NCBI GenBank assembly: GCA_002269645.1
Contig: NIVC01000815.1
Span: 361,902 to 425,901 of the forward strand
Direction of reading: 5' to 3'
Length of the DNA stretch: 64,000 nt
Source of the DNA: Macrostomum lignano
Lineage: Eukaryota
Shown here: positions 371 through 53,724 of the stretch, piece after piece
How the letters are laid out: each line of letters opens with the position of its first letter
How positions within the stretch are numbered: position 1 is the stretch's first letter
Made by a program: the position numbers and the translations under genes
The notes under the pieces: generated by a model
What the model saw: only the letters and a program-made list of their open reading frames with translations
What the model was told of the DNA's origin: nothing
The model's database searches: none

Positions 371-416
371 AAGTCCCTCATTAAAAATGCCCCAATGCCC
401 CATCCGCATTCCTCAG

Positions 417-3604: not shown

Positions 3605-6600
3605 TCACATGTACTGTTCGTCATCTTCATTGCCGTAGATGTACTGAAACATGACCAGCTTTTCCAGCACTTCTTTATATGCTTCTTTCTCCTCTCGGCT
3701 GAGGAATTCTCCTTCGGGGTCGATCTCATCTCGTAGGATATAGCCGTCTGAAATGTTTTTCAATTTTATCTGAATCAATAAAGCTAAAATACTACCAACT
3801 TTTCGACTACCTTTCAGGATCTCTCACTTGTCAGTGTTGAGCACAGCTGTTCCATGACCCACACACAGCAGACTCACACTTGTCAGTGTTGAGCAGAAAA
3901 GTTTTTCTGCTCCATGACCCACACACAGCAGACTCACACTTGTCAGTGTTGAGCACAGCTGCTCCATGACCCACACACAGCAGACTCACACTTGTCACTG
4001 TTGAGCACAGCTGCTCCATGACCCACACACAGCAGACTCACACTTGTCAGTGTTGAGCACAGCTGCTCCATGACCCACACACAGCAGACTCACACTTGTC
4101 ACTGTTGAGCACAGCTGCTCCATGACCCACACACAGCAGACTCACACTTGTCAGTGCTGAGCACAGCTGCTCCATGACCCACACACAGCAGACTCACACT
4201 TGTCACTGTTGAGCACAGCTGCTCCATGACCCACACACAGCAGACTCACACTTGTCAGTTGAGCAGCTGCTCCATGACCCACACACAGCAGACTCACACT
4301 TGTCAGTGCTGAGCACAGCTGCTCCATGACCCACACACAGCAGACTCACACTTGTCACTGTTGAGCACAGCTGCTCCATGACCCACACACAGCAGACTCA
4401 CACTTGTCAGTGTTGAGCACAGCTGCTCCATGACCCACACACAGCAGACTCACACTTGTCAGTGTTGAGCACAGCTGCTCCATGACCCACACACAGCAGA
4501 CTCACACTTGTCAGTGTTGAGCACAGCTGCTCCATGACCCACACACAGCAGACTCACACTTGTCAGTGTTGAGCACAGCTGCTCCATGACCCACACACAG
4601 CAGACTCACACTTGTCAGTGCTGAGCACAGCTGCTCCATGACCCACACACAGCAGACTCACACTTGTCAGTGCTGAGCACAGCTGCTCCATGACCCACAC
4701 ACAGCAGACTCACACTTGTCAGTGCTGAGCACAGCTGCTCCATGACCCACACACAGCAGACTCACACTTGTCAGTGTTGAGCACAGCTGCTCCATGACCC
4801 ACACACAGCAGACTCACACTTGTCAGTGTTGAGCACAGCTGCTCCATGACCCACACACAGCAGACTCACACTTGTCACTGTTGAGCACAGCTGCTCCATG
4901 ACCCACACACAGCAGACTCACACTTGTCAGTGCTGAGCACAGCTGCTCCATGACCCACACACAGCAGACTCACACTTGTCAGTGTTGAGCACAGCTGCTC
5001 CATGACCCACACACAGCAGACTCACACTTGTCAGTGTTGAGCACAGCTGCTCCATGACCCACACACAGCAGACTCACACTTGTCAGTGCTGAGCACAGCT
5101 GCTCCATGACCCACACACAGCAGACTCACACTTGTCACTGTTGAGCACAGCTGCTCCATGACCCACACACAGCAGACTCACACTTGTCAGTGTTGAGCAC
5201 AGCTGCTCCATGACCCACACACAGCAGACTCACACTTGTCAGTGCTGAGCACAGCTGCTCCATGACCCACACACAGCAGACTCACACTTGTCAGTGTTGA
5301 GCACAGCTGCTCCATGACCCACACACAGCAGACTCACACTTGTCAGTGTTGAGCACAGCTGCTCCATGACCCACACACAGCAGACTCACACTTGTCACTG
5401 TTGAGCACAGCTGCTCCATGACCCACACACAGCAGACTCACACTTGTCAGTGTTGAGCACAGCTGCTCCATGACCCACACACAGCAGACTCACACTTGTC
5501 AGTGTTGAGCACAGCTGCTCCATGACCCACACACAGCAGACTCACACTTGTCAGTTGAGCACAGCTGCTCCATGACCCACACACAGCAGACTCACACTTG
5601 TCACTGTTGAGCACAGCTGCTCCATGACCCACACACAGCAGACTCACACTTGTCAGTGTTGAGCACAGCTGCTCCATGACCCACACACAGCAGACTCACA
5701 CTTGTCAGTGTTGAGCACAGCTGCTCCATGACCCACACACAGCAGACTCACACTTGTCAGTGTTGAGCACAGCTGCTCCATGACCCACACACAGCAGACT
5801 CACACTTGTCAGTGCTGAGCACAGCTGCTCCATGACCCACACACAGCAGACTCACACTTGTCAGTGTTGAGCACAGCTGCTCCATGACCCACACACAGCA
5901 GACTCACACTTGTCACTGTTGAGCACAGCTGCTCCATGACCCACACACAGCAGACTCACACTTGTCAGTGTTGAGCACAGCTGCTCCATGACCCACACAC
6001 AGCAGACTCACACTTGTCACTGTTGAGCACAGCTGCTCCATGACCCACACACAGCAGACTCACACTTGTCAGTGTTGAGCACAGCTGCTCCATGACCCAC
6101 ACACAGCAGACTCACACTTGTCAGTGCTGAGCACAGCTGCTCCATGACCCACACACAGCAGACTCACACTTGTCAGTGTTGAGCACAGCTGCTCCATGAC
6201 CCACACACAGCAGACTCACACTTGTCAGTGTTGAGCACAGCTGCTCCATGACCCACACACAGCAGACTCACACTTGTCAGTGTTGAGCACAGCTGCTCCA
6301 TGACCCACACACAGCAGACTCACACTTGTCAGTGTTGAGCACAGCTGCTCCATGACCCACACACAGCAGACTCACACTTGTCAGTGCTGAGCACAGCTGC
6401 TCCATGACCCACACACAGCAGACTCACACTTGTCAGTGTTGAGCACAGCTGCTCCATGACCCACACACAGCAGACTCACACTTGTCAGTGTTGAGCACAG
6501 CTGCTCCATGACCCACACACAGCAGACTCACACTTGTCAGTGTTGAGCACAGCTGCTCCATGACCCACACACAGCAGACTCACACTTGTCAGTGTTGAGC

Positions 6601-9600
6601 ACAGCTGCTCCATGACCCACACACAGCAGACTCACACTTGTCAGTGCTGAGCACAGCTGCTCCATGACCCACACACAGCAGACTCACACTTGTCAGTGCT
6701 GAGCACAGCTGCTCCATGACCCACACACAGCAGACTCACACTTGTCAGTGCTGAGCACAGCTGCTCCATGACCCACACACAGCAGACTCACACTTGTCAG
6801 TGCTGAGCACAGCTGCTCCATGACCCACACACAGCAGACTCACACTTGTCAGTGTTGAGCACAGCTGCTCCATGACCCACACACAGCAGACTCACACTTG
6901 TCAGTGTTGAGCACAGCTGCTCCATGACCCACACACAGCAGACTCACACTTGTCACTGTTGAGCACAGCTGCTCCATGACCCACACACAGCAGACTCACA
7001 CTTGTCAGTGCTGAGCACAGCTGCTCCATGACCCACACACAGCAGACTCACACTTGTCAGTGTTGAGCACAGCTGCTCCATGACCCACACACAGCAGACT
7101 CACACTTGTCAGTTGAGCACAGCTGCTCCATGACCCACACACAGCAGACTCACACTTGTCAGTGCTGAGCACAGCTGCTCCATGACCCACACACAGCAGA
7201 CTCACACTTGTCAGTGTTGAGCACAGCTGCTCCATGACCCACACACAGCAGACTCACACTTGTCAGTGTTGAGCACAGCTGCTCCATGACCCACACACAG
7301 CAGACTCACACTTGTCAGTGCTGAGCACAGCTGCTCCATGACCCACACACAGCAGACTCACACTTGTCAGTGTTGAGCACAGCTGCTCCATGACCCACAC
7401 ACAGCAGACTCACACTTGTCAGTGTTGAGCACAGCTGCTCCATGACCCACACACAGCAGACTCACACTTGTCACTGTTGAGCACAGCTGCTCCATGACCC
7501 ACACACAGCAGACTCACACTTGTCAGTGTTGAGCACAGCTGCTCCATGACCCACACACAGCAGACTCACACTTGTCAGTTGAGCACAGCTGCTCCATGAC
7601 CCACACACAGCAGACTCACACTTGTCAGTGTTGAGCACAGCTGCTCCATGACCCACACACAGCAGACTCACACTTGTCAGTGTTGAGCACAGCTGCTCCA
7701 TGACCCACACACAGCAGACTCACACTTGTCAGTGCTGAGCACAGCTGCTCCATGACCCACACACAGCAGACTCACACTTGTCAGTGCTGAGCACAGCTGC
7801 TCCATGACCCACACACAGCAGACTCACACTTGTCAGTGTTGAGCACAGCTGCTCCATGACCCACACACAGCAGACTCACACTTGTCAGTGCTGAGCACAG
7901 CTGCTCCATGACCCACACACAGCAGACTCACACTTGTCAGTGCTGAGCACAGCTGCTCCATGACCCACACACAGCAGACTCACACTTGTCAGTGCTGAGC
8001 ACAGCTGCTCCATGACCCACACACAGCAGACTCACACTTGTCACTGTTGAGCACAGCTGCTCCATGACCCACACACAGCAGACTCACACTTGTCAGTTGA
8101 GCACAGCTGCTCCATGACCCACACACAGCAGACTCACACTTGTCAGTGTTGAGCACAGCTGCTCCATGACCCACACACAGCAGACTCACACTTGTCAGTG
8201 CTGAGCACAGCTGCTCCATGACCCACACACAGCAGACTCACACTTGTCAGTGTTGAGCACAGCTGCTCCATGACCCACACACAGCAGACTCACACTTGTC
8301 AGTGTTGAGCACAGCTGCTCCATGACCCACACACAGCAGACTCACACTTGTCAGTGCTGAGCACAGCTGCTCCATGACCCACACACAGCAGACTCACACT
8401 TGTCAGTGTTGAGCACAGCTGCTCCATGACCCACACACAGCAGACTCACACTTGTCAGTGTTGAGCACAGCTGCTCCATGACCCACACACAGCAGACTCA
8501 CACTTGTCAGTGCTGAGCACAGCTGCTCCATGACCCACACACAGCAGACTCACACTTGTCAGTGCTGAGCACAGCTGCTCCATGACCCACACACAGCAGA
8601 CTCACACTTGTCAGTGTTGAGCACAGCTGCTCCATGACCCACACACAGCAGACTCACACTTGTCAGTGTTGAGCACAGCTGCTCCATGACCCACACACAG
8701 CAGACTCACACTTGTCAGTGTTGAGCACAGCTGCTCCATGACCCACACACAGCAGACTCACACTTGTCAGTTGAGCACAGCTGCTCCATGACCCACACAC
8801 AGCAGACTCACACTTGTCAGTGTTGAGCACAGCTGCTCCATGACCCACACACAGCAGACTCACACTTGTCAGTGTTGAGCACAGCTGCTCCATGACCCAC
8901 ACACAGCAGACTCACACTTGTCAGTGTTGAGCACAGCTGCTCCATGACCCACACACAGCAGACTCACACTTGTCAGTGTTGAGCACAGCTGCTCCATGAC
9001 CCACACACAGCAGACTCACACTTGTCAGTGTTGAGCACAGCTGCTCCATGACCCACACACAGCAGACTCACACTTGTCAGTGTTGAGCACAGCTGCTCCA
9101 TGACCCACACACAGCAGACTCACACTTGTCAGTGTTGAGCACAGCTGCTCCATGACCCACACACAGCAGACTCACACTTGTCAGTGTTGAGCACAGCTGC
9201 TCCATGACCCACACACAGCAGACTCACACTTGTCAGTGTTGAGCACAGCTGCTCCATGACCCACACACAGCAGACTCACACTTGTCAGTGTTGAGCACAG
9301 CTGCTCCATGACCCACACACAGCAGACTCACACTTGTCAGTGTTGAGCACAGCTGCTCCATGACCCACACACAGCAGACTCACACTTGTCAGTGTTGAGC
9401 ACAGCTGCTCCATGACCCACACACAGCAGACTCACACTTGTCAGTGTTGAGCACAGCTGCTCCATGACCCACACACAGCAGACTCACACTTGTCAGTGTT
9501 GAGCACAGCTGCTCCATGACCCACACACAGCAGACTCACACTTGTCAGTTGAGCACAGCTGCTCCATGACCCACACACAGCAGACTCACACTTGTCAGTG

Positions 9601-12600
9601 TTGAGCACAGCTGCTCCATGACCCACACACAGCAGACTCACACTTGTCAGTGTTGAGCACAGCTGCTCCATGACCCACACACAGCAGACTCACACTTGTC
9701 AGTGTTGAGCACAGCTGCTCCATGACCCACACACAGCAGACTCACACTTGTCAGTGTTGAGCACAGCTGCTCCATGACCCACACACAGCAGACTCACACT
9801 TGTCAGTTGAGCACAGCTGCTCCATGACCCACACACAGCAGACTCACACTTGTCAGTGTTGAGCACAGCTGCTCCATGACCCACACACAGCAGACTCACA
9901 CTTGTCAGTGTTGAGCACAGCTGCTCCATGACCCACACACAGCAGACTCACACTTGTCAGTGTTGAGCACAGCTGCTCCATGACCCACACACAGCAGACT
10001 CACACTTGTCAGTTGAGCACAGCTGCTCCATGACCCACACACAGCAGACTCACACTTGTCAGTTGAGCACAGCTGCTCCATGACCCACACACAGCAGACT
10101 CACACTTGTCAGTGTTGAGCACAGCTGCTCCATGACCCACACACAGCAGACTCACACTTGTCAGTGTTGAGCACAGCTGCTCCATGACCCACACACAGCA
10201 GACTCACACTTGTCAGTGTTGAGCACAGCTGCTCCATGACCCACACACAGCAGACTCACACTTGTCAGTGTTGAGCACAGCTGCTCCATGACCCACACAC
10301 AGCAGACTCACACTTGTCAGTGTTGAGCACAGCTGCTCCATGACCCACACACAGCAGACTCACACTTGTCAGTGTTGAGCACAGCTGCTCCATGACCCAC
10401 ACACAGCAGACTCACACTTGTCAGTGTTGAGCACAGCTGCTCCATGACCCACACACAGCAGACTCACACTTGTCAGTTGAGCACAGCTGCTCCATGACCC
10501 ACACACAGCAGACTCACACTTGTCAGTGTTGAGCACAGCTGCTCCATGACCCACACACAGCAGACTCACACTTGTCAGTGTTGAGCACAGCTGCTCCATG
10601 ACCCACACACAGCAGACTCACACTTGTCAGTTGAGCACAGCTGCTCCATGACCCACACACAGCAGACTCACACTTGTCAGTGTTGAGCACAGCTGCTCCA
10701 TGACCCACACACAGCAGACTCACACTTGTCAGTGTTGAGCACAGCTGCTCCATGACCCACACACAGCAGACTCACACTTGTCAGTGTTGAGCACAGCTGC
10801 TCCATGACCCACACACAGCAGACTCACACTTGTCAGTGTTGAGCACAGCTGCTCCATGACCCACACACAGCAGACTCACACTTGTCAGTGTTGAGCACAG
10901 CTGCTCCATGACCCACACACAGCAGACTCACACTTGTCAGTGTTGAGCACAGCTGCTCCATGACCCACACACAGCAGACTCACACTTGTCAGTGTTGAGC
11001 ACAGCTGCTCCATGACCCACACACAGCAGACTCACACTTGTCAGTGTTGAGCACAGCTGCTCCATGACCCACACACAGCAGACTCACACTTGTCAGTGTT
11101 GAGCACAGCTGCTCCATGACCCACACACAGCAGACTCACACTTGTCAGTGTTGAGCACAGCTGCTCCATGACCCACACACAGCAGACTCACACTTGTCAG
11201 TGTTGAGCACAGCTGCTCCATGACCCACACACAGCAGACTCACACTTGTCAGTGTTGAGCACAGCTGCTCCATGACCCACACACAGCAGACTCACACTTG
11301 TCAGTGTTGAGCACAGCTGCTCCATGACCCACACACAGCAGACTCACACTTGTCAGTGTTGAGCACAGCTGCTCCATGACCCACACACAGCAGACTCACA
11401 CTTGTCAGTGTTGAGCACAGCTGCTCCATGACCCACACACAGCAGACTCACACTTGTCAGTGTTGAGCACAGCTGCTCCATGACCCACACACAGCAGACT
11501 CACACTTGTCAGTGTTGAGCACAGCTGCTCCATGACCCACACACAGCAGACTCACACTTGTCAGTGTTGAGCACAGCTGCTCCATGACCCACACACAGCA
11601 GACTCACACTTGTCAGTGTTGAGCACAGCTGCTCCATGACCCACACACAGCAGACTCACACTTGTCAGTGTTGAGCACAGCTGCTCCATGACCCACACAC
11701 AGCAGACTCACACTTGTCAGTGTTGAGCACAGCTGCTCCATGACCCACACACAGCAGACTCACACTTGTCAGTGTTGAGCACAGCTGCTCCATGACCCAC
11801 ACACAGCAGACTCACACTTGTCAGTGTTGAGCACAGCTGCTCCATGACCCACACACAGCAGACTCACACTTGTCAGTGTTGAGCACAGCTGCTCCATGAC
11901 CCACACACAGCAGACTCACACTTGTCAGTTGAGCACAGCTGCTCCATGACCCACACACAGCAGACTCACACTTGTCAGTGTTGAGCACAGCTGCTCCATG
12001 ACCCACACACAGCAGACTCACACTTGTCAGTGTTGAGCACAGCTGCTCCATGACCCACACACAGCAGACTCACACTTGTCAGTGTTGAGCACAGCTGCTC
12101 CATGACCCACACACAGCAGACTCACACTTGTCAGTGTTGAGCACAGCTGCTCCATGACCCACACACAGCAGACTCACACTTGTCAGTTGAGCACAGCTGC
12201 TCCATGACCCACACACAGCAGACTCACACTTGTCAGTGTTGAGCACAGCTGCTCCATGACCCACACACAGCAGACTCACACTTGTCAGTGTTGAGCACAG
12301 CTGCTCCATGACCCACACACAGCAGACTCACACTTGTCAGTGTTGAGCACAGCTGCTCCATGACCCACACACAGCAGACTCACACTTGTCAGTGTTGAGC
12401 ACAGCTGCTCCATGACCCACACACAGCAGACTCACACTTGTCAGTGTTGAGCACAGCTGCTCCATGACCCACACACAGCAGACTCACACTTGTCAGTGTT
12501 GAGCACAGCTGCTCCATGACCCACACACAGCAGACTCACACTTGTCAGTGTTGAGCACAGCTGCTCCATGACCCACACACAGCAGACTCACACTTGTCAG

Positions 12601-15600
12601 TGTTGAGCACAGCTGCTCCATGACCCACACACAGCAGACTCACACTTGTCAGTGTTGAGCACAGCTGCTCCATGACCCACACACAGCAGACTCACACTTG
12701 TCAGTGTTGAGCACAGCTGCTCCATGACCCACACACAGCAGACTCACACTTGTCAGTTGAGCACAGCTGCTCCATGACCCACACACAGCAGACTCACACT
12801 TGTCAGTGTTGAGCACAGCTGCTCCATGACCCACACACAGCAGACTCACACTTGTCAGTTGAGCACAGCTGCTCCATGACCCACACACAGCAGACTCACA
12901 CTTGTCAGTGTTGAGCACAGCTGCTCCATGACCCACACACAGCAGACTCACACTTGTCAGTGTTGAGCACAGCTGCTCCATGACCCACACACAGCAGACT
13001 CACACTTGTCAGTGTTGAGCACAGCTGCTCCATGACCCACACACAGCAGACTCACACTTGTCAGTGTTGAGCACAGCTGCTCCATGACCCACACACAGCA
13101 GACTCACACTTGTCAGTGTTGAGCACAGCTGCTCCATGACCCACACACAGCAGACTCACACTTGTCAGTGTTGAGCACAGCTGCTCCATGACCCACACAC
13201 AGCAGACTCACACTTGTCAGTGTTGAGCACAGCTGCTCCATGACCCACACACAGCAGACTCACACTTGTCAGTGCTGAGCACAGCTGCTCCATGACCCAC
13301 ACACAGCAGACTCACACTTGTCAGTGTTGAGCACAGCTGCTCCATGACCCACACACAGCAGACTCACACTTGTCAGTGTTGAGCACAGCTGCTCCATGAC
13401 CCACACACAGCAGACTCACACTTGTCAGTGTTGAGCACAGCTGCTCCATGACCCACACACAGCAGACTCACACTTGTCAGTGTTGAGCACAGCTGCTCCA
13501 TGACCCACACACAGCAGACTCACACTTGTCAGTGTTGAGCACAGCTGCTCCATGACCCACACACAGCAGACTCACACTTGTCAGTGTTGAGCACAGCTGC
13601 TCCATGACCCACACACAGCAGACTCACACTTGTCAGTGTTGAGCACAGCTGCTCCATGACCCACACACAGCAGACTCACACTTGTCAGTGTTGAGCACAG
13701 CTGCTCCATGACCCACACACAGCAGACTCACACTTGTCAGTTGAGCACAGCTGCTCCATGACCCACACACAGCAGACTCACACTTGTCAGTGTTGAGCAC
13801 AGCTGCTCCATGACCCACACACAGCAGACTCACACTTGTCAGTGTTGAGCACAGCTGCTCCATGACCCACACACAGCAGACTCACACTTGTCAGTGTTGA
13901 GCACAGCTGCTCCATGACCCACACACAGCAGACTCACACTTGTCAGTGTTGAGCACAGCTGCTCCATGACCCACACACAGCAGACTCACACTTGTCAGTG
14001 TTGAGCACAGCTGCTCCATGACCCACACACAGCAGACTCACACTTGTCAGTGTTGAGCACAGCTGCTCCATGACCCACACACAGCAGACTCACACTTGTC
14101 AGTGTTGAGCACAGCTGCTCCATGACCCACACACAGCAGACTCACACTTGTCAGTGTTGAGCACAGCTGCTCCATGACCCACACACAGCAGACTCACACT
14201 TGTCAGTGTTGAGCACAGCTGCTCCATGACCCACACACAGCAGACTCACACTTGTCAGTGTTGAGCACAGCTGCTCCATGACCCACACACAGCAGACTCA
14301 CACTTGTCAGTGTTGAGCACAGCTGCTCCATGACCCACACACAGCAGACTCACACTTGTCAGTGCTGAGCACAGCTGCTCCATGACCCACACACAGCAGA
14401 CTCACACTTGTCAGTGTTGAGCACAGCTGCTCCATGACCCACACACAGCAGACTCACACTTGTCAGTGTTGAGCACAGCTGCTCCATGACCCACACACAG
14501 CAGACTCACACTTGTCAGTGTTGAGCACAGCTGCTCCATGACCCACACACAGCAGACTCACACTTGTCAGTGTTGAGCACAGCTGCTCCATGACCCACAC
14601 ACAGCAGACTCACACTTGTCAGTGTTGAGCACAGCTGCTCCATGACCCACACACAGCAGACTCACACTTGTCAGTGTTGAGCACAGCTGCTCCATGACCC
14701 ACACACAGCAGACTCACACTTGTCAGTGTTGAGCACAGCTGCTCCATGACCCACACACAGCAGACTCACACTTGTCAGTGTTGAGCACAGCTGCTCCATG
14801 ACCCACACACAGCAGACTCACACTTGTCAGTGTTGAGCACAGCTGCTCCATGACCCACACACAGCAGACTCACACTTGTCAGTGCTGAGCACAGCTGCTC
14901 CATGACCCACACACAGCAGACTCACACTTGTCACTGTTGAGCACAGCTGCTCCATGACCCACACACAGCAGACTCACACTTGTCAGTGTTGAGCACAGCT
15001 GCTCCATGACCCACACACAGCAGACTCACACTTGTCAGTGTTGAGCACAGCTGCTCCATGACCCACACACAGCAGACTCACACTTGTCAGTGTTGAGCAC
15101 AGCTGCTCCATGACCCACACACAGCAGACTCACACTTGTCAGTGTTGAGCACAGCTGCTCCATGACCCACACACAGCAGACTCACACTTGTCAGTGTTGA
15201 GCACAGCTGCTCCATGACCCACACACAGCAGACTCACACTTGTCAGTGTTGAGCACAGCTGCTCCATGACCCACACACAGCAGACTCACACTTGTCAGTG
15301 CTGAGCACAGCTGCTCCATGACCCACACACAGCAGACTCACACTTGTCAGTGTTGAGCACAGCTGCTCCATGACCCACACACAGCAGACTCACACTTGTC
15401 AGTGTTGAGCACAGCTGCTCCATGACCCACACACAGCAGACTCACACTTGTCAGTGTTGAGCACAGCTGCTCCATGACCCACACACAGCAGACTCACACT
15501 TGTCAGTGTTGAGCACAGCTGCTCCATGACCCACACACAGCAGACTCACACTTGTCAGTGTTGAGCACAGCTGCTCCATGACCCACACACAGCAGACTCA

Positions 15601-18600
15601 CACTTGTCAGTGTTGAGCACAGCTGCTCCATGACCCACACACAGCAGACTCACACTTGTCAGTGTTGAGCACAGCTGCTCCATGACCCACACACAGCAGA
15701 CTCACACTTGTCAGTGTTGAGCACAGCTGCTCCATGACCCACACACAGCAGACTCACACTTGTCAGTGTTGAGCACAGCTGCTCCATGACCCACACACAG
15801 CAGACTCACACTTGTCAGTGCTGAGCACAGCTGCTCCATGACCCACACACAGCAGACTCACACTTGTCAGTGCTGAGCACAGCTGCTCCATGACCCACAC
15901 ACAGCAGACTCACACTTGTCAGTTGAGCACAGCTGCTCCATGACCCACACACAGCAGACTCACACTTGTCAGTGTTGAGCACAGCTGCTCCATGACCCAC
16001 ACACAGCAGACTCACACTTGTCAGTGTTGAGCACAGCTGCTCCATGACCCACACACAGCAGACTCACACTTGTCAGTGTTGAGCACAGCTGCTCCATGAC
16101 CCACACACAGCAGACTCACACTTGTCAGTGTTGAGCACAGCTGCTCCATGACCCACACACAGCAGACTCACACTTGTCAGTGTTGAGCACAGCTGCTCCA
16201 TGACCCACACACAGCAGACTCACACTTGTCAGTGTTGAGCACAGCTGCTCCATGACCCACACACAGCAGACTCACACTTGTCAGTGTGAGCACAGCTGCT
16301 CCATGACCCACACACAGCAGACTCACACTTGTCACTGTTGAGCACAGCTGCTCCATGACCCACACACAGCAGACTCACACTTGTCAGTGTTGAGCACAGC
16401 TGCTCCATGACCCACACACAGCAGACTCACACTTGTCAGTGCTGAGCACAGCTGCTCCATGACCCACACACAGCAGACTCACACTTGTCACTGTTGAGCA
16501 CAGCTGCTCCATGACCCACACACAGCAGACTCACACTTGTCACTGTTGAGCACAGCTGCTCCATGACCCACACACAGCAGACTCACACTTGTCAGTGTTG
16601 AGCACAGCTGCTCCATGACCCACACACAGCAGACTCACACTTGTCAGTGTTGAGCACAGCTGCTCCATGACCCACACACAGCAGACTCACACTTGTCAGT
16701 GTTGAGCACAGCTGCTCCATGACCCACACACAGCAGACTCACACTTGTCAGTGTTGAGCACAGCTGCTCCATGACCCACACACAGCAGACTCACACTTGT
16801 CAGTGTTGAGCACAGCTGCTCCATGACCCACACACAGCAGACTCACACTTGTCAGTGTTGAGCACAGCTGCTCCATGACCCACACACAGCAGACTCACAC
16901 TTGTCAGTGTTGAGCACAGCTGCTCCATGACCCACACACAGCAGACTCACACTTGTCAGTGTTGAGCACAGCTGCTCCATGACCCACACACAGCAGACTC
17001 ACACTTGTCAGTGTTGAGCACAGCTGCTCCATGACCCACACACAGCAGACTCACACTTGTCAGTGTTGAGCACAGCTGCTCCATGACCCACACACAGCAG
17101 ACTCACACTTGTCACTGTTGAGCACAGCTGCTCCATGACCCACACACAGCAGACTCACACTTGTCAGTGTTGAGCACAGCTGCTCCATGACCCACACACA
17201 GCAGACTCACACTTGTCACTGTTGAGCACAGCTGCTCCATGACCCACACACAGCAGACTCACACTTGTCAGTGCTGAGCACAGCTGCTCCATGACCCACA
17301 CACAGCAGACTCACACTTGTCACTGTTGAGCACAGCTGCTCCATGACCCACACACAGCAGACTCACACTTGTCAGTGTTGAGCACAGCTGCTCCATGACC
17401 CACACACAGCAGACTCACACTTGTCAGTGCTGAGCACAGCTGCTCCATGACCCACACACAGCAGACTCACACTTGTCACTGTTGAGCACAGCTGCTCCAT
17501 GACCCACACACAGCAGACTCACACTTGTCACTGTTGAGCACAGCTGCTCCATGACCCACACACAGCAGACTCACACTTGTCAGTGTTGAGCACAGCTGCT
17601 CCATGACCCACACACAGCAGACTCACACTTGTCAGTGCTGAGCACAGCTGCTCCATGACCCACACACAGCAGACTCACACTTGTCAGTGTTGAGCACAGC
17701 TGCTCCATGACCCACACACAGCAGACTCACACTTGTCAGTGCTGAGCACAGCTGCTCCATGACCCACACACAGCAGACTCACACTTGTCAGTGTTGAGCA
17801 CAGCTGCTCCATGACCCACACACAGCAGACTCACACTTGTCAGTGTTGAGCACAGCTGCTCCATGACCCACACACAGCAGACTCACACTTGTCAGTGCTG
17901 AGCACAGCTGCTCCATGACCCACACACAGCAGACTCACACTTGTCAGTGCTGAGCACAGCTGCTCCATGACCCACACACAGCAGACTCACACTTGTCAGT
18001 GCTGAGCACAGCTGCTCCATGACCCACACACAGCAGACTCACACTTGTCACTGTTGAGCACAGCTGCTCCATGACCCACACACAGCAGACTCACACTTGT
18101 CACTGTTGAGCACAGCTGCTCCATGACCCACACACAGCAGACTCACACTTGTCAGTGCTGAGCACAGCTGCTCCATGACCCACACACAGCAGACTCACAC
18201 TTGTCAGTGTTGAGCACAGCTGCTCCATGACCCACACACAGCAGACTCACACTTGTCAGTGTTGAGCACAGCTGCTCCATGACCCACACACAGCAGACTC
18301 ACACTTGTCACTGTTGAGCACAGCTGCTCCATGACCCACACACAGCAGACTCACACTTGTCACTGTTGAGCACAGCTGCTCCATGACCCACACACAGCAG
18401 ACTCACACTTGTCAGTGTTGAGCACAGCTGCTCCATGACCCACACACAGCAGACTCACACTTGTCAGTGCTGAGCACAGCTGCTCCATGACCCACACACA
18501 GCAGACTCACACTTGTCAGTGTTGAGCACAGCTGCTCCATGACCCACACACAGCAGACTCACACTTGTCAGTGCTGAGCACAGCTGCTCCATGACCCACA

Positions 18601-21600: not shown

Positions 21601-23584
21601 GATGCTGCTGCTGCTGCAATTTCTGCAGCTGCCCTCGCCTTGCCCTCGTCGTGCGTTGGCACGCTGACTTCGCTGTCGGAGCTGCTGCTGCGGCGCGAGC
21701 CGTCGCCTCCGTCCGGAGGGTCCAGTCCAATTTCAACCGGCTGCTGCTGATCGCTGGGGGAGGGGTTGGGTGCAATTTTAAAGCCTAAATTTGATGACGT
21801 TCTCCACCATCAAACAAAACTAAAGCACGAGTAGTGAGTAGTGAGAGATCTCATAGCACGATTTCATAAAGATCTGTGCAGACTTCCAACTTACATCACT
21901 CCTCTGAACCAGCCTGTTTTAGTCTGCTAAACTATCCTTTTCAAACCAGTCTGTCTTCGAATTCCATAGTCGAAGTGCTCCCTTACTATTTTGATTTTCG
22001 TTATTTCTTGGACCGCGGAATCCCATACTGATTCCGCGGCATTTCCGCCCCTAGCCGCTCCCTACTATTCTGATTCCGCCCCCCCCCCAGCCGCTCCCTA
22101 CTATCCTGATTCCGCCCCCTAGTCGCTGCCTACTATCCTGATTCCGGCCCCTAGCCGCTCCCTACTATCCTGATTCCGCCCCCTAGCCGCTCCCTACTAT
22201 CCTGATTCCTCCCCGTAGCCGCTCTCTAGCATCCTGATTCCGCCCCTATCCACTCTCTCCCAACCCTGATTCCGCCCCGTAGCCGCTCCCTACCATCCTG
22301 CTGATTCCTCCCCTAGCCGCTCCCTACCATCCTGAATCCGCCCCTATCCACTCTCTCCCACCCTGATTCCTCCCATATCCACTCCCTACCATCATGATTC
22401 CTCCCCTAGCCGCTCCCTACCATCCTGATTCCTCCCATATCCACTCCCTACCATCATGATTCCTCCCCTAGCCGCTCCCTACCATCCTGATTCCTCCCAT
22501 ATCCACTCCCTACCATCATGATTCCTCCCCTAGCCGCTCCCTACCATCCTGATTCCTCCCATATCCACTCCCTACCATCATGATTCCTCCCCTAGCCGCT
22601 CCCTACCATCCTGATTCCTCCCATATCCACTCCCTACCATCATGATTCCTCCCCTAGCCGCTCCCTACCATCCTGAATCCGCCCCTAGCCGCTCCCTACC
22701 ATCCTGAATCCGCCCCTGGCCGCTCCCTACCATCCTGATTCCACCCCTAGCCGCTCCCTCCCATCCTGAAATCCGGCACTCACGGCGGATGCAGCTGCCG
22801 ATTCGAGGTTGTCAGCTTCCCGCCTCCGGCTGATCCGTCGGCGCTCGAACCCGAGACCGTCCTCCCCCCGCGGGTTGCGCCGGCCGCCTTCTTGTCAGAT
22901 GAATCGCGCTTGGGCGACTTTTTTCTTTTAATGATTTTGTGGAGCCTGAAAAGAAAGACAAAAGCTTTTTATGCAGTCATGCAGCTCAATGTCAGAATTA
23001 TTACTCATTCAATAATTGTAGTGGTTTTCAATATTTTACTGTTTTATTGCACATTAATGGAGTTAATTTAATTGATCCCTCGCGATGAGCATGCAATTAA
23101 CTTAAAATAACTTCCGTACATTGACTCCTGAAAGGGTGAAAGATAATTTAATGCGTAACGTAATCAATTATGAGCTTTTGCATAAGTACATCTGTGCATT
23201 CTGATAAGCATTCAAATCACTATACATGTATCTGTGCAGTGGAGCTGCTTCTGGGTTCCAGCTCACCTTCTTCTTAATTTTCTTATCGCTGACAGGCTGC
23301 TGCTCAGCACTATGGCTGTCCCCATCCGCTGTCGTGACGTTGACCTCCACCTCCGCCTGCTTGACCACCGGTTTCAGCTCCAGGCCGCTGATCTTGACGC
23401 TGATCGTTCGGATTTGCACCGTTTCGTTGTTGATGACGAGGCACAAGCCGGGCAGATTGGCGCAGCCGTCTGCTTGCTTTGGCGAGTCAGTCGATTCTTC
23501 CAGCGTCTGGAGTTTCGAGTCCAGCGAACAGCGCGACTCAACCTCCTGATCCACTTCTTTGTCGCGGCCGAGCGTGGCTGACAT
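3605..23584 (-). CDS. Uncharacterised 7-exon protein, paralogue A (~419 aa): low-complexity Lys/Ser/Ala-rich N-terminus and conserved ~145-aa C-terminal domain
   Basis: Exons (minus): 23584-23267, 23127-23120 (8 nt), 22945-22784, 21753-21490, 20838-20721, 19719-19473, 3747-3605. All introns are GT..AG, the phases chain without a stop (1260 nt), and exon structure and peptides match paralogue B (e.g. NFPHDVPEKVKSLFE|IMPSTRLIATVY, GTDK|YGYILRDEIDPEG). An extra upstream exon is possible (aaacag|GAAATG). Confidence 0.8.
3825..19483. repeat. Giant 52-bp satellite array (~300 copies) filling the last intron of paralogue A
   Basis: Sense (minus) unit CACTGACAAGT GTGAGT CTGCTGTGTGTGGGTCATGGAGCAGCTGTGCTCAA/G; 15.66 kb / 52 is about 300 units. 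The many MWVMEQLCS.. ORFs are artefacts of it. Confidence 0.99.
21139..21410. repeat. Degenerate ~23-bp minisatellite (gaatatctgtagattgttgttag) in an intron of paralogue A
   Basis: Repeated gaatatctgtagattg motif between exons 21490 and 20838. Confidence 0.8.
22040..22770. repeat. 30-bp minisatellite (ccctagccgctccctaccatcctgattcct) in an intron of paralogue A
   Basis: About 24 tandem copies, starting about 10 nt after the GTGAGT donor at 22783-22778 (minus strand). Confidence 0.95.
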
Positions 23585-26701: not shown

Positions 26702-29700
26702 CTACCCGGCACTCTCGCCAGCCTCCCCGCCTTCAACTGCACCAGCTGAAGGCTCAGACTGCTGCTCACCAGGTGGTGCCGACTTCTCAATCAGTCCGGC
26801 TGACTCGCTGCTCTCAGCCCACGGCTGCAGCTCGCCAGAAGAGCAGAACAGATAGAATAGCGAGGTGGCCACGTGGACCAGGGCTGCGATGAAGAACACC
26901 AGCTGCCACTCGCCGGCTGTGCCGTGTCGAGTCACTGCGCTGGCCACGATGGGAGACAGGACGCCTGTGCGGTTTCAGGGTGGGGGGTTATAGCGGCTGA
27001 GTTGATCAGGCTGCGTATGCTCTATACGGATTATTCCTTTTGCACACATCAGATTGCTAATTAAGGACTTCTTAGAAGATAACGCAGGGGAGGGGCTACG
27101 GCTCTTTTAAAGAAGACGCTCCAGTACATGCATTTAGCCTCTTGGGCAGGACATCTGCCTACCTACCAAAAGAGACAGGTGCGCCCACCTATACATGTAA
27201 ATCCGTGCATCCGACGTCAGACGTTCCCGACATCGTGCGACGTCCATTGCAAATTTTTATTTTTATACCTTACACAGACGTTCACCCGACGTTAGTAAAA
27301 AGTATTTAGGACGGCAGGAATAACAAAAAATAATCAGAAGTACTCGATTGGTCATCGTAGGATGATGGATACACCTGTCAATCAGTGGAACATGTATAGC
27401 TACGAGCTACATGTAAAGCGCGATCAAGTAGAGCTCGGGACCAAACCCGAGACACTTTATCCAAGTCCCTCTCTTGTAGGGTTTTCAGCCGACTTTTCCG
27501 ACAATTTATCGATTGCATTCAGTAGCCCTCCCTCTGTTTCATTTGCCAACCAACAAAGTTCGACAGTCTGGCGCTCACCTGACACGGTGCCAACACCATT
27601 GGAGATGCCCATCAGGAATCCAGCGAATCTGGGCGCAATGTCCAAATGGTTGACGCCGTAGCCGGACATGCCAATCCCCGTGAAGCCCAAGCCTATGGTC
27701 AGGAAGGCTGTGGACAGGTAGAGATTGCGCGAGATGCCCACAACAACTAGGCAGGCCGCCATTACGCCGAACCCGACAGTGTTGAATAGACGACGCGTCG
27801 CCGTGGTGGACAGGAACTTGCGACGAACGCAGTCGGCAAGGGTGCCACCTGCAATTTTCAGGGAGAGTTTAAGATCCATTTAGCATACTTGCGGGAGTAT
27901 TTTTATAGTATTTTTCTAGGATTGTTACGAAAGACGCTAATTTAGGTTGGGTTTAGTTTGCTTAATAGAGGAAAGGCAGACTCAAGGATGAGGGAACGGA
28001 GAGACTGACTCAAGGATGAGGGAACGGAGAGACTGACTCAAGGATGAGGGAACGGAGAGACTGACTCAAGGATGAGGGAACGGAGAGACTGACTCAAGGA
28101 TGAGGGAACGGGGAGGCTGACTCAAGGATGAGGGAACGGAGAGACTGACTCAAGGATGAGGGAACGGAGAGACTGACTCAAGGATGAGGGAACGGAGAGA
28201 CTGACTCAAGGATGAGGGAACGGAGAGACTGACTCAAGGATGAGGGAACGGAGAGGCTGACTCAATGATGAGGGAACGGAGAGGCTGACTCAAGGATGAG
28301 GGAACGGGGAGGCTGACTCAAGTATGAAGGAAAAGAGAGGCTGACTCAAAGATGAGAGAACGGGGAGGCTGACTCAAGTATGAAGGAACAGAGAGGCAGA
28401 CTCAAGGATGATTAATCTAATTGCCTCGCAATATTGTTATCGATTTGTTCTTAGTGAGTGAGTTATATTCTAACATAAATGTACATCTTGGTTTGCATAA
28501 TTCATGTACATCGTATTGTTCACTTTTAGAACCTCAAATATATAATCGCTAACTTGGCCAGTTTGGGCCTCACGTTTTTTCTCGCTCAGCTTAAACCGCA
28601 GTCTTCAGACTTTACAATGAAGGAAGACTCAAGGATGATAAAGGAACGGAGAAGCAGACTTAAGGATGAGGGAACGGAGAGGCTGACTCATGGATGAGGG
28701 AACGGGGAGAGGCTGACTCATGGATGAGGGAACGGAGAGGCTGACTCAATGATGAGGGAACGGGGAGAGGCTGACTCAAGGATGAGGGAACGGGGAGGCT
28801 GACTCAAGGATGAGGGAACGGAGAGGCTGACTCATGGATGAGGGAACGGAGAGGCTGACTCAAGGATGAGGGAACGGGGAGGCTGACTCAAGGATGAGGG
28901 AACGGATAGGCTGACTCAAGGATGAGGTAACGGAGAGGCTGACTCAAGGATGAGGGAACGGAGAGGCTGACTCATGGATGAGGGAACGGAGAGGCTGACT
29001 CAATGATGAGGGAACGGGGAGAGGCTGACTCAAGGATGAGGGAACGGGGAGGCTGACTCAAGGATGAGGGAACGGAGAGGCTGACTCATGGATGAGGGAA
29101 CGGAGAGGCTGACTCAAGGATGAGGGAACGGGGAGGCTGACTCAAGGATGAGGGAACGGATAGGCTGACTCAAGGATGAGGTAACGGAGAGGCAGAATCA
29201 AGGGCTGAGCTGGAGAGCGAGTTAAGAAGCAAATTTTAGAAAGGTTGAAAACTTATTATAATAGTATATCTAAAAGCAATTGAAAAGCTTGAATAAAATG
29301 GACAGAACTGAAAGCAGACTTTGAACTGGGCATTTCTTGAAAAGCTTTAAAAAGAACGCACCAACTGGCGTGAGCCCGGCCATGAGCAGGAACGGAATCA
29401 TTAAATAAATTCCAACCTCCTCGCTATTCAAATCGAACACTCGCGAGAAATAGGCCGGCAGGCCGATCATGCTGAACTGGAAGCTCCAGTTGCGCCCGAC
29501 GTTGGCAAATACGATGGCCCATACGGGCAGCGACCTGACCATCGCTGCGCAAGGCACCTGGCCTGTAGCTGTGGCTGGCACGCTGCTGCTCTCAATGTAG
29601 GCCAGCTCCTCCGGGCTGATGTAGGGATCGGTTGCCGGCCTAGAGTGCACGATGAGGAACCAGGCAACCGCCCAGGCGCAGCCGAGCGCCCCAAAGATGT

Positions 29701-30331
29701 AAAAATTCACTGGCCAGCCCAGATTGGTGGTGACGGCGCCGCAGAGCGGCAGGCCAACAATGGGCCCGAGGGCCATGCCGAAGAAGGAAATCGTCACTAG
29801 TTTGGATCGCTCCATCTCGGGCGCCCAGAATCGCCAGATGCCGTGAACGGAAGGATAGAGGCAGCCCTCGGCCATGCCCTGCAGCAGCCGGATGGTGAGG
29901 GTGACGCCGAATGCGGCGGACGGCACCTCCAGATGAGCGGCCGTCGGCACGGCAATGTTCAATAGGCAGGTGATCAGCACGGAGCTTCCCAAGAGCATGT
30001 TTGGCTCCAGGTAGGACGACATGAAGCCAGCCGGTATGCTGAACAAAGCGTAGCCGATAAAAAATGAAGCCTCAATGATGCCAATGTCCAGGTGATCCCA
30101 GGCCACCTCCTGAACCAGCTCGATTTTGTAGTAGGTGTGATTCCGAGCGGTCATCTCCACCTTCTCCGGTTGCTTTTTGGTCATCTTGATAATGGCGATG
30201 CCCATCTCTGAGCGCATCGCCAGCACCACCATGAGGCCGAGGCAGCTGAGCCACGCCACTACGTAGCGCTTCCAGCCGGGGCCGGTGCAGCGGCCTTCAG
30301 CTATGCCGACGCCCGCCGATTTGCCCGACAT
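26702..30331 (-). CDS. VGLUT: SLC17 family anion transporter, vesicular glutamate transporter (VGLUT/EAT-4)-like, ~500 aa
   Basis: Exons 30331-29362, 27848-27579, 26964-26702 (GT..AG, phase 1/1, 1503 nt). Motifs KRYVVAWLSCLG, EGCLYPSVHGIWRFWAPEMERSKL, VNHLDIAPRFAGFLMGISNGVGT and SGELQPWA are typical of SLC17/VGLUT. The ORF-track start at 30448 is GTG with an in-frame stop upstream; the first ATG is 30331. Confidence 0.88.
27980..28412. repeat. 28-bp minisatellite (gactcaaggatgagggaacggagagact), block 1, VGLUT intron 1
   Basis: About 15 tandem copies. Confidence 0.95.
28626..29205. repeat. 28-bp minisatellite, block 2, VGLUT intron 1
   Basis: About 20 copies of the same unit, separated from block 1 by about 210 bp of unique AT-rich DNA. 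Confidence 0.95.
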
Positions 30332-31526
30332 TTGTCTTCGTTTTTCGCTTCCGCTCCGTCCAAGGCCGATGCCGCTGCCTCCTCTGCTGTCCCAGATGAC
30401 GTCGGAGTCGTCTGCGTCGCTATTGTCGCTAGAGCCGGTTGAAGGCACCGGTTGGTGAGTCGCTGCTGTCGCTGCCGCCGCCGCCGCTGCGGGAGTGCCT
30501 CTACGATGGCTGATCGTCTTGCTCTACGCGGTCGGGAGTTCTTCCGTCTGGAATTTTCTGCGCTCTAACGAATCTGTAGATTCAGTGCAACAGTTTCCAG
30601 TGAGGCCAATATATGCCTGAATTTAGTACGGAAATGGAAAGAGACCGACAGTGGGAAGAAAAATCAAGCAACCCGCGTGTGCAATTCCTTACAATTCTGA
30701 CAGTGAGAGATCAAGTTATAGGGAAGGAAATTGCAGGGTTAGTGGTCTCTTAGACTTGCGTTGGAAATATTTGCGCTTGAATTTTTTATGTAGGCGTACG
30801 TCTCAACGCTGAACCGGACGAGTGGGTAGGAAAGATCGGTTTCGGTGTAGAGCTGGCCGGGTATTGCAGCAGGAATTGGAGCACTATAAAGCTCAACTGA
30901 GCGAGTTCTGTATAGGGGCTTGAGCAACAACGGATTAGAAGCACGGATGTACAGTTCTTCCACTCCATTCAACTGGAGTTTGTCGCCTCGGTGTGCCATT
31001 TTAAGGGAGAGGGGGAGAGAAATACTAGGAAAAGAAAAGAGAAAAGTATACCAAACTTCTCGATCCCCATTGACTCTAACATTTTGCAAGGAGGCCCATA
31101 TATGAAGGCGAATTGATTTGGGTTAAATTCTATACAGACGAAAAATTATATAAAGCTCCTGCTGCTACGGAAGGACAAAATTTTACAGAGCGGCATGGCG
31201 ACTGACGATTGTGGCAACAGCTGGCAGCTGTTGCTCGCAGAGGGGCGCGTGTATAACAAGGTACATGTATTAATAATGTCCGTATATGTACACTATATAT
31301 ACCTCAATGCTCAAAAGGCAAATTACACTCTAATCATACACAAGTGTATTGTACATGTCGTAGCTTTAAATTCCTGCGCTGAGCACTCAAATCAAGGATT
31401 TGTCATTACTTTGCTCAATAAATGCGTGTAGCTACGAACGTGCGTACGTACTTACTGTCTTTGTTTACCGAAATTCCCAGTTTTTGTTTTTTTGCGCACA
31501 CTCGGACGGAAATTAATTATTGAAGG

Positions 31527-33190: not shown

Positions 33191-35828
33191 ATGAACGAAA
33201 GGCCATCGCGAGATCCGGCAGTGGACCCAAAGAACGTCAGCGTTCAGCTGCCTGTTCCAGGCGGCGGCAGCAGCCCGAGGAACCTCACGATCACCCTGGC
33301 AATCAGCGTGCAGGTGACGGAGATTCCGGGCGTCACAATCGGGCTGGCCGGCGTGGATTTGAAGCATGCCGGTCCGGTGATCCCGGATGTGTCCACCGTT
33401 CCGGCGAGCACGATGCAACAGCAGCCTGCAACACGATGCGGCACGGACGAAGCATCTTCTATCAACAAGGAAAAGAAGGTAGATAACCAATCAAATTTAT
33501 ATCATGACTAGAGGATTTCTGTGACAGAAGACTTGATATTGGTGACTCTCGGTCCAATTTTTTCCCATTTCAGAAGTCGAATTTGTAAGCAAGATATTTG
33601 TTGAAGCTCAAGGAGCTGCGATGCTGCCGACCTGTTTAAATAACCTGTCAAACGTAAAATGAACGTTTGTCTTTTTTCAGCTTTTCCCGGAAGAAGAAAA
33701 CCCAGAATTCGCAGATACTTCAACAGCAGCAGCAGTTGGCAGGACCAGGCGAACCAGCGACCTCTGAAGCTCTTATGCCCCCTGAGCCTGTGAACAGCGC
33801 TCTTCCCGTCGCTCCGCAGGGCAAACCTTTGCCACCGACTTCTAGCGGCACCCTTGAACTGCCTACGCAGCCGTCGCTGCCTCTGCCCTCGGCCAGTTCA
33901 GCTAGAGCAGGCAAAAAGTACGACTCTGCGAGCATTGCTAGTCCGTCTGCTTTTTTAAATCAGAAGATAAAAAACCTATGGCAAGGGAGTCTGCGAAGGC
34001 GGGGATAGGAGGGACCTGCCTCCAATTTAGTTGCCTCACATTAGACTTGTGGAGAAATAAAGAAGCGCTAGCAGTAACCAATGAAACAAAGTGTACTTGC
34101 TTTTGAGAGAGTTATGGACTAAAAATGGAGCTATAATTCTGGACTTCTGCGGCGCCAAAATAAGTCCCATGGGCGCCAAGATAGGTGCCAAAAACTGCTG
34201 TTACTGTCCACCCCACCAACCTGACAAAGAAGACGATGTACGTTTGATCGTCCTATATTCACGTGCTTGTACAACATTGGTTCCTGAATTGACCATTCTA
34301 ATATTCAAAATCATATTAATAGCTCGTACAGCTAGTAAAACAAAATAGTAGAAATGCTTTAACCTAGTATAACAAAACATACTTTGAGTTGCTAAAAACC
34401 CCTATGAAAGGCCAAACAAAGGCGGCAAAACTGATGAAAACAAAACTGAAAACGGCGACGACAGCTCGGACGACGAAATCGACATGACGAAGGCGGCGGC
34501 GGCGGCGGATCTGGGCGGCAGGAACACGGTGGAAAGCGAGATTGGCGACAATGGGGAGAACACCTGCGGCTCAGGCGGCGCTGGCAAGGCGGGGGCCTCT
34601 GGCAGAAGCAAGTAAGCAGCTATTTGGTCTTCGATCTACGAGTATTACAATAGTTAGCTAGTGCGCAGAGGGCTCTAGGCTATCTCTGTAACCCGAGCAC
34701 ACATAGTACATCTTTTACATATTCAGACTTCAATGACTGCCATATTGAAACCACAGGCAACAATTAAAATAAATTTCCCCATCTTTTTAGAAAGTTTCAA
34801 CTCTTTGGCAGAAGCAAAAAAGACAAACCCAAGGGCAACGCCGATTCCGGAACGTTCAACTTCCCGCAAGATTTGCCAGACAATGCCAAGACGCTGTTTC
34901 AGGTAGGCTTCGGTGGCAATACCTATGCAATGGCGCAGCTGCAGAATCTCAGCAATCCAACCCGTCACTGCACTTCTAGATCATGTCGGACAGCCGCCTC
35001 ATCGCCACAGTCTACGCTTCTAACGCCGGTCGCACTCCGGCCGTGAAAAAGCAGAAAGCCCTGCTGACAGAGAGCGCCGAGAAGCGCTTCACGGTCGACG
35101 GCAAGTCCCGGTCAGTCTGGCTGGATCCGCCTGCCGGGGAGAAGGTGGAGATTTGGAAGGAGTACTTTGGCGACGATGGAGAGTGCAACAGAGCTCTGGG
35201 CAGGCTGCCCGGCACTGACAAGTGTGAGTCAGCTGTGTGTGGGTCATGGAGCAGCTGTGCTCAGCACTGACAAGTGTGAGTCTGCTGTGTGTGGGTCATG
35301 GAGCAGCTGCGCTCAGCACTGACAAGTGTGAGTCTGCTGTGTGTGGGTCATGGAGCAGCTGCGCTCAGCACTGACAAGTGTGAGTCTGCTGTGTGTGGGT
35401 CATGGAGCAGCTGTGCTCAGCACTGACAAGTGTGAGTCTGCTGTGTGTGGGTCATGGAGCAGCTGTGCTCAGCACTGGCAAGTGTGAGTCTGCTGTGTGT
35501 GGGTCATGGAGCAGCTGCGCTCAGCACTGGCAAGTGTGAGTCTGCTGTGTGTGGGTCATGGAGCAGCTGTGCTCAACACTGACAACATGACAACTGAATT
35601 TGTTGCGTGCTGGGTCTTAGCGGAGCCAAGATTGAATGTTTTTTGTCCCCATCAAACCAGAGTTTGCTGAGGAACAATCTTTTTCAACTATCTTTCAACT
35701 CAGACGGCTACATCCTGAGAGACGAGATCGATGAAGAAGGCCAGTTTGCGCCCAAGGAGGAGCAGGAAGCCTACAATGACAGCCTCCAATTGCTGACCAT
35801 GTTCATGGACATCTACGGCAACGATTGA
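33191..35828 (+). CDS. Uncharacterised 7-exon protein, paralogue B (~405 aa)
   Basis: Exons 33191-33478, 33574-33584 (11 nt), 33681-33917, 34411-34611, 34791-34902, 34980-35223, 35704-35828. GT..AG introns, phases chain (1218 nt), homologous to paralogue A (NTVESEIG vs NTVDSETG; NFPQDLPDNAKTLFQ|IMSDSRLIATVY; GTDK|YGYILRDEIDEEG). The acceptor at 34410 is weak. A possible extra upstream exon 31195-31260 would splice in frame to 33167. Confidence 0.8.
35213..35585 (+). repeat. Short array (7 full units + partial) of the same 52-bp satellite, last intron of paralogue B
   Basis: Units start at 35213, 35265, 35317, 35369, 35421, 35473, 35525; near-identical to the reverse complement of the 3825-19483 unit. 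Confidence 0.97.
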
Positions 35829-53681: not shown

Positions 53682-53716
53682 TATAAATAGAAATTGCTGC
53701 TACTGGAAAAATCAGA
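53682..53716 (+). promoter_or_regulatory. Candidate TATA box plus initiator upstream of the protocadherin ATG
   Basis: TATAAATA at 53682-53689 and TCAGA at 53712-53716, 30 bp apart, just before ATG 53725. Confidence 0.45.
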
Positions 53717-53724
53717 GGACAGCA

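Follow-up and report, generated by a model that had tools for sequence, protein, structure and literature searches.

How does one intron come to hold some 300 copies of a satellite unit when its counterpart in an inverted paralogue holds seven? The question is raised by two genes, here called A and B, in a 64,000-nucleotide stretch of the Macrostomum lignano genome (assembly GCA_002269645.1, contig NIVC01000815.1, positions 361,902 to 425,901 of the forward strand). This whole stretch is referred to as the window, and positions are counted from its first letter. The last intron of each gene carries a tandem array of the same 52-bp unit. The particular feature of the locus is that this repeat unit is the gene's own splice junction, present as hundreds of identical donors in two old paralogues.

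Gene pair and intronic satellite

Both genes were rebuilt from the raw sequence by means of consensus splice sites, with GT-AG borders at all 12 introns of the two models. The open reading frames (ORFs) of both genes are intact.

3605..23584, minus strand: gene A, 419 aa, 7 exons
23584-23267, 23127-23120 (8-nt microexon), 22945-22784, 21753-21490, 20838-20721, 19719-19473, 3747-3605, minus strand: exons of gene A
33191..35828, plus strand: gene B, 405 aa, 7 exons
33191-33478, 33574-33584 (11-nt microexon), 33681-33917, 34411-34611, 34791-34902, 34980-35223, 35704-35828, plus strand: exons of gene B

The intron phases (0,2,2,2,0,1) are identical in A and B, and in both genes the exon 1 donor and the exon 3 acceptor, each of them strong, are out of frame with each other if the microexon is skipped. 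The two proteins align with E = 7e-80 and 43% identity overall (blastp). Conservation is strong over the C-terminal ~150 aa, and the N-terminal halves are diverged and of low complexity. A tblastn search of the window returned A and B as the only copies of the gene. With a VGLUT2-like gene between them, the two are transcribed away from each other. The first-pass annotation, which was made from the letters of the window, had proposed the same models, and the independent rebuild reproduced its figures exactly: seven exons, 419 and 405 aa, the series of phases, and an intron 6 of 15,725 nt in A versus 480 nt in B. The blastp comparison and the position of the VGLUT2-like gene likewise bear out the inverted, outward-pointing arrangement of the pair and the conserved C-terminal domain behind diverged, low-complexity N termini. 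Intron 3 of A contains a 31-bp array (22043-22769, 23 copies), which makes up most of the extra length of this intron relative to that of B.

Intron 6 of both genes is occupied by the satellite.

3826..19472, minus strand: satellite in intron 6 of A, 299 units with 300 GTGAGT donor copies, the centre homogenised and the edges variant
35224..35585, plus strand: satellite in intron 6 of B, 7 donor copies, mostly of the G ("b"-type) variant, which is the closest to the exon tail

Tandem Repeats Finder placed the A array at 3907-19437 (299.3 copies, 98% matches) and the B array, which is its reverse complement, at 35212-35585 (7.2 copies, 97%). The 52-bp array takes up approximately 15.6 kb of intron 6 of A (15.7 kb in all), in agreement with the earlier proposal that the difference in size between the two introns comes from the copy number of one 52-bp unit (~300 versus 7). 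Searches of the rest of the window with the unit and with half-units, mismatches being allowed, found no further occurrence.

The origin of the unit is apparent from its comparison with the end of exon 6. On the sense strand the unit reads GTGAGTCTGCTGTGTGTGGGTCATGGAGCAGCTGTGCTCA[A/G]CACTGACAAGT, and exon 6 ends in …CTGCCCGGCACTGACAAGT|GTGAGTCTG, where the bar marks the splice junction. The unit begins with the intron's own donor, its last 12 nt equal the exon tail exactly, and 16 of its last 18 nt match that tail; every unit copies the 5' splice site ACAAGT|GTGAGTCTG. These letters identify the 52-bp unit as the exon 6/intron 6 junction copied in tandem, which gives A intron 6 its 300 identical 5' splice sites. 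Counted in the context shared from -11 to +12, GTGAGT occurs 300 times in intron 6 of A and seven times in that of B. Reading exon 6 on into the array leads to a stop after 15 codons, and a protein made from any later donor would accordingly be truncated.

The exon tail CCCGGCACTGAC and its phase-1 GTGAGT donor are also found in a third paralogue, C (GenBank PAA71376.1), which is without the 52-bp array. There, the tail reads CTGCCCGGCACTGAC and stands at the same place as in A and B. This indicates that the coding tail predates the satellite and that the satellite did not give the exon its donor.

The array of A is made of 12 unit variants in irregular order, with long single-variant runs in the centre and mixed variants at both edges. 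The "b" variant, which has the exon's G, dominates the array of B and the edges of that of gene A, and the derived A variant fills the centre of the latter. A homogenised centre with variant edges is the usual mark of unequal exchange, and the distribution of the variants suggests that the large expansion happened in gene A.

Each unit also contains CAG|CTGTGCTCAACACTGACAAGT|GTGAGT, a hypothetical in-frame cassette of 21 nt (SVLNTDK) that could be repeated between exons 6 and 7. As an exon this cassette has a poor acceptor context and is used by no model, and it is not claimed here.

In the existing database models of B and A (P0001 and P0002, respectively), exons 6 and 7 are joined as …LPGTDK|YGYILRDEID…, at the junction (TDK|YGY) that the first-pass annotation had proposed. 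A failure of transcripts to join the proposed exons, one of the outcomes that this annotation had named as refuting it, is not indicated by these models. An assembled contig of a homologous mRNA (L001) is likewise continuous at that point.

Probable gene conversion tract and competing explanations

Identity between A and B is distributed very unevenly along the two genes, and is concentrated at the end of exon 6 and in the array that follows it.

19473..19606, minus strand: exon part of the conversion tract in gene A, the last 134 nt of exon 6; the tract runs on into the satellite
35090..35223, plus strand: exon part of the conversion tract in gene B, the last 134 nt of exon 6

Within these last 134 nt, 133 are identical between the two genes, compared with 70% nucleotide identity over the first 112 nt of the same exon and 58-67% in exons 1, 3, 4, 5, and 7 (the 8-/11-nt microexon being too short to judge). 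Beyond the exon, the donor and the array share this identity, which breaks off with the last unit, the rest of the intron and exon 7 being diverged; exon tract and array together are ~99% identical between A and B. An inverted-repeat finder independently recovered the same tract, with arms at 19453-19614 and 35082-35243 that match at 97%. Nei-Gojobori counts put the proportion of synonymous differences (pS) at 0.03 for the tract and at a saturated 0.74 for the remaining domain. Over the 44 codons of the tract, 1 of ~31 synonymous sites differs, versus ~74% of the sites in the flanking codons. The near-identical tract, synonymous sites included, therefore lies between regions of old divergence on both sides, which is the pattern by which interlocus conversion is recognised. 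Saturated synonymous sites elsewhere together with a near-identical tract indicate an old duplication and a recent tract, and the whole pattern points to recent ectopic gene conversion between duplicates that are themselves ancient. Outside the tract, the domain has a rate of nonsynonymous differences (dN) of 0.28 and a saturated rate of synonymous differences (dS), which shows that both copies are under purifying selection.

The account that we consider quite likely leads from a junction-born unit, through amplification, ectopic conversion, and drift in copy number, to an array that is spliced out from its first donor. A 52-bp segment over the exon 6/intron 6 boundary, comprising at least 18 nt of exon tail and ~34 nt of intron head, would have been duplicated in tandem, and the unit would then have been amplified into an array. 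Recent ectopic gene conversion would have copied the array, along with the 134 nt of exon 6 next to it, between the inverted paralogues, in one direction or the other, probably after a break in or beside the array. The copy number would since have drifted to 7 and 299 via unequal exchange or replication slippage, with a derived unit variant sweeping the centre of A's array. In vivo, the first donor would be the one used, to the exclusion of the others. This would place the whole array inside the intron, to be removed with it, and the array itself would be without function.

Several points weigh against this account. The use of the first donor is read from database models of uncertain origin (P0001 and P0002) and from the intronless homologous transcript L001, and the 15.5-kb length of the array comes from a single assembly. 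The conversion is deduced from the pattern of identity and not from a tree, there being no outgroup species. The fold prediction for the encoded domain is fragile, given that two of the five models of the family member P0003 are confident and that full-length B has a mean predicted local distance difference test score (pLDDT) of 33.

The array could alternatively be functional. Its 300 perfect donors would then form a copy-number-tunable sink or set of decoys for the U1 small nuclear ribonucleoprotein, competing with the true donor along the 15.7-kb intron. Splicing of A would be delayed or reduced relative to that of B, or its pre-mRNA would be held on chromatin, and the copy number would set the difference in expression between the paralogues. 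How much, how fast, or where A is spliced compared with B would in that case be set by a satellite derived from the gene's own splice junction. All 300 units do carry an intact GTGAGT in the -11 to +12 context of the true donor, products of the later donors, with their stop after 15 codons, would be truncated and probably degraded, and the length of intronic tandem repeats is known to alter splicing in humans (PMC10078293). A young, homogenised array with 98% identity throughout would, however, be expected to conserve the donor in any case. Moreover, the equivalent intron of C holds unrelated arrays without a sense-strand splice motif, which vary 4.5-fold between copies of that gene, and the RNA of the unit, with three units folded, showed no unusual structure (z = -0.9). 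The functional reading fits the anatomy, but no observation requires it, and we regard it as unlikely.

An equally doubtful explanation is that the 299 copies are an artefact of a mis-estimated tandem array and that A and B in reality differ far less. Assembly of a 15.5-kb array with 98% identity is difficult, and retrieval of the locus from a second assembly, attempted via a neighbouring 527-aa ORF, gave nothing. The array nonetheless has the features of read-supported arrays, namely 12 variants in irregular order, distinct edges, and a homogenised centre, and up to 87 copies were assembled for a related intron in the older Mlig_3_7 assembly. That gene A is decaying, crippled by its giant satellite intron and leaving B alone functional, would agree with the enlarged intron and with a garbled fusion (P0002) as its only database model. 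The garbling also hits the VGLUT part of that fusion, though, and so looks like the result of assembly indels rather than of gene decay. All seven exons of A are open and have consensus splice sites, and the dN of 0.28 against saturated dS outside the tract implies purifying selection for most of the history of A, which makes decay a slightly poorer prospect than either of the preceding explanations. Much the least credible is that strong selection on nucleotides, exerted by splicing enhancers or RNA structure, and not conversion, keeps the 3' part of exon 6 nearly identical. The tract does border a splice donor, where exonic splicing signals are located, but the contrast in synonymous sites between the tract and its flanking codons speaks against it, and paralogue C encodes a similar peptide by very different nucleotides. 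The identity also extends into the non-coding repeats and stops at their far edge, which selection of this kind cannot explain.

Protein family, paralogue C, and database models

To what protein these genes belong was explored with an exhaustive phmmer search, in which the translation of exon 6 of B was compared with 1.84 billion representative proteins. Five real matches were obtained (P0001, P0002, P0003, P0004, and P0006), and the named entries among them are all from Macrostomum lignano.

P0003, 197 aa: ORF on the 1035-nt assembled contig L001 from run SRR30276804
P0004, 462 aa: the third paralogue, C, which is GenBank PAA71376.1, hypothetical protein BOX15_Mlig006728g1
P0006, 1050 aa: paralogue C with a spurious extension

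Exon 6 of B scored 2.3e-14 with P0004 and 2.0e-14 with P0003. Contig L001 is uninterrupted across all homologous exon junctions, which indicates that it is derived from mRNA, and its reading frame stays open upstream of the TTG that was called as the start. The remaining entries P0005 and P0007-P0013 are bacterial repeat proteins that match short repeated stretches by composition, and they were rejected as relatives. Another homology search gave no match for the domain of B and P0003 only for the family profile; it missed known M. lignano members and is therefore a weak negative. No Pfam family was found for A, B, P0003, P0004, or the UniProt models (hmmscan versus Pfam-A), nor any match at E <= 0.1 for P0001, P0014, P0015, P0002, and P0006; a sub-threshold match to HlyD_3 (E = 0.03) was discarded. 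Searches of the PDB by sequence and by profile returned no relative, the window had no match in Rfam, and a literature search for the locus tag and the Sequence Read Archive run found nothing. A well-known, already annotated family, which the first-pass annotation had named as an outcome that would overturn its proposal, was thus not encountered in Pfam or the PDB. The family has been seen so far only in M. lignano and in one RNA-derived contig, and is without a known domain.

The names that UniRef gives to homologous members of the family conflict with one another, being IRS-type PTB, 53BP1 Tudor, MBD, and BRCT. None of the four is reproduced by Pfam, so these names look unreliable. The family alignment has ~40 invariant positions, including FP..P, GKSRSVWL.P.AGE..E.WK.Y, and PGT..GY.L..E.D, and three of the four lineages end in YM.

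AlphaFold2, run on P0003 with an alignment of four sequences, gave a pLDDT of 81-92 over residues 44-175, with a predicted strand, a helix, five consecutive strands, and a C-terminal helix. Given the low confidence obtained for full-length B, the statement on the fold is drawn from the P0003 model alone. Comparison of this model with the PDB by Foldseek returned only SH3 domains (best E = 0.16, probability 0.66-0.77, TM-score ~0.6 on the target length), and tentatively the domain is probably a small beta-barrel with flanking helices. All of the best Foldseek matches of one confident family model are SH3 domains, but with E >= 0.16 and neither a sequence nor a Pfam signal for SH3 in the family, the likeness to SH3-like small beta-barrels is a resemblance only. 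The faint likeness to SH3BGR or thioredoxin-like proteins that the first-pass annotation had seen at the start of the domain found no support. Neither A and B (E <= 1) nor P0003 and the C-terminal domains of A, B, and P0004 (E <= 10) matched an SH3BGR or thioredoxin-fold family of Pfam, and in the tentative model the predicted elements lack the alternating beta-alpha-beta core of a thioredoxin fold, the top fold matches being SH3 barrels. The best explanation for these observations is that in the proteins of both genes a disordered N-terminal half precedes a globular domain of ~130 aa at the C terminus, which belongs to an uncharacterised family.

The locus of P0004 (L002) was taken from GCA_002269645.1, and the GenBank protein could be mapped onto it exactly under GT-AG rules.

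10001-10444, 10664-10671 (8 nt), 11048-11236, 12537-12710, 13170-13311, 13737-13986, 14643-14824: exons of paralogue C in L002

Like A and B, paralogue C has seven exons with intron phases 0,2,2,2,0,1, and in all three genes the second exon measures 8 to 11 nt. The microexon of C occupies the homologous position, with a similar basic stretch after it. Since the GenBank annotation behind PAA71376.1 was transcriptome-guided (PMC5730564), the microexon and structure of C favour the B model of the first-pass annotation over that of UniProt and give independent backing to the proposed exon structure. The C-terminal domain of C is 42-45% identical to those of A and B (tblastn E = 1e-18 to 2e-20; 46% by phmmer), and the YM at its C terminus is also found in gene A. 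The protein has two further near-identical copies, PAA92883.1 and PAA85080.1. These genes differ from A and B in lying at another locus, in having no inverted partner within their 10-kb flanks, and in the array of their last intron, which is unrelated and has an 18-bp unit. This array counts 26 copies in L002 (14162-14631), 87 in L003 (14086-15633), and 19 in L004 (13491-13835), in gene copies that are otherwise near-identical. The 18-bp unit has GTGAGT on its reverse complement, so the donor-like motif is antisense there. In M. lignano, 15% of the genome consists of tandem and simple repeats (PMC5730564), and arrays of 19, 26, and 87 copies in C show that a large gap in intronic copy number is an extreme of normal behaviour in this genome.

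The first-pass annotation had described A and B as unannotated. This is true only in part, B being in UniProt under three entries and A being present only as a garbled fusion with VGLUT; mis-annotated is the better word for both. Gene B appears as A0A1I8HVP9, A0A1I8GJU6, and A0A1I8GW80, in which the microexon is skipped or a false 5' extension added. The first of these (UniProt/UniRef A0A1I8HVP9, M. lignano, 398 aa) is P0001. It aligns to the rebuilt gene B with no mismatches and one 15-aa gap at the microexon, which it lacks, a downstream acceptor being used instead. In P0015, gene B has been given a false 5' extension, which crosses exon 1 of VGLUT in the antisense direction. P0002 (A0A1I8F8L1, 589 aa), the only database model of gene A, fuses frame-shifted 3' exons of VGLUT to it. 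No GenBank protein is present in the 90% clusters of A and B. The annotation of two genes is thereby corrected, with regard to the missed microexon of B and the false VGLUT fusion of A. The fusions lie at 26700-23470 of the window in P0002 and at 29600-33160 in P0015, the latter joining gene B via an acceptor near 33156. These fusions are either read-through or polycistronic transcripts, which are known in the trans-splicing M. lignano (PMC5730564), or else artefacts of unstranded assembly.

Related systems and neighbouring features

Between the human G-gamma- and A-gamma-globin genes, a simple repeat in the large intron forms the end of the conversion tract, and the arms of Y-chromosome palindromes undergo arm-to-arm gene conversion. 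The present locus resembles both in having a short near-identical tract within old, diverged duplicates, with a tandem repeat at or inside the tract boundary, and in the Y palindromes the copies are also inverted on one chromosome, as A and B are. It differs from them in that the tract carries a whole minisatellite whose copy number later diverged 40-fold.

Giant introns with satellite DNA are known from the Drosophila Y-linked fertility genes kl-3 and kl-5 (PMC6508621). There, as in gene A, an intron of a coding gene consists almost entirely of one tandem repeat that has to be transcribed through and removed. Those introns are, however, megabases long and made of simple satellites, whereas the intron of A measures 15.7 kb and its 52-bp unit comes from the gene's own exon/intron junction. 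A 7-copy paralogue lies 16 kb away, and no dedicated expression programme is known here. The human spl-TRs, which are intronic minisatellites or variable-number tandem repeats that influence splicing (PMC10078293), are comparable as tandem repeats of variable length beside a splice site within an intron. Their unit is a motif for RNA-binding proteins, in contrast with the satellite of A and B, where each unit is a full-strength copy of the donor and an effect on splicing is only hypothetical.

The locus neatly illustrates genome dynamics that M. lignano commonly shows, and it does not represent a novel type of system. With intronic tandem arrays being very frequent in this genome and no long-standing open question touched, its importance is modest. 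It brings together three stages in the history of a minisatellite, from birth at a junction through spread by conversion to copy numbers that differ 40-fold. The naturally occurring contrast of 7 versus 299 copies further lends itself to the question of how a spliceosome recognises the right donor when hundreds are identical, which is testable because transgenesis works in M. lignano (PMC5730564).

Between A and B lies the gene that separates them.

26702..30448, minus strand: VGLUT2-like SLC17 gene, with a 392-aa first-exon ORF (E = 6e-61 to PDB 8sbe/7t3o)

Tandem Repeats Finder detected many arrays in the window, including those in intron 3 of gene A and in an intron of VGLUT. The latter has a 28-bp unit (27970-29203, ~44 copies, 78% matches) and is unrelated to the 52-bp satellite. 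A different 31-bp array is located downstream of gene A, at 2538-2811. Between the start of A and the 3' end of VGLUT, a foldback inverted repeat (24605-25240) has 221-nt arms, 95% complementary and 194 nt apart, and may be a hairpin or a MITE-like element. The 527-aa ORF mentioned above (387-1970, plus strand) directly follows a 15-bp array at 1-370; it has a borderline match to the WWE domain (E = 4e-4), and no identical protein is on record.

The other side of the window contains a long terminal repeat (LTR) retrotransposon at 48572-53094; its ORFs are gag-like (DUF7083) or code for reverse transcriptase, RNase H, and integrase. One ORF start, MLKAKSQKHNS, is found at both 48572 and 52753, a repetition that suggests the two LTRs. 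The retrotransposon is followed by a cadherin-repeat gene on the plus strand (53629-58279) and by a gene for an RFC3-like clamp-loader subunit on the minus strand (60811-63355), the introns of which hold minisatellites with units of 40 bp (61355-61810) and 23 bp (62144-62879).

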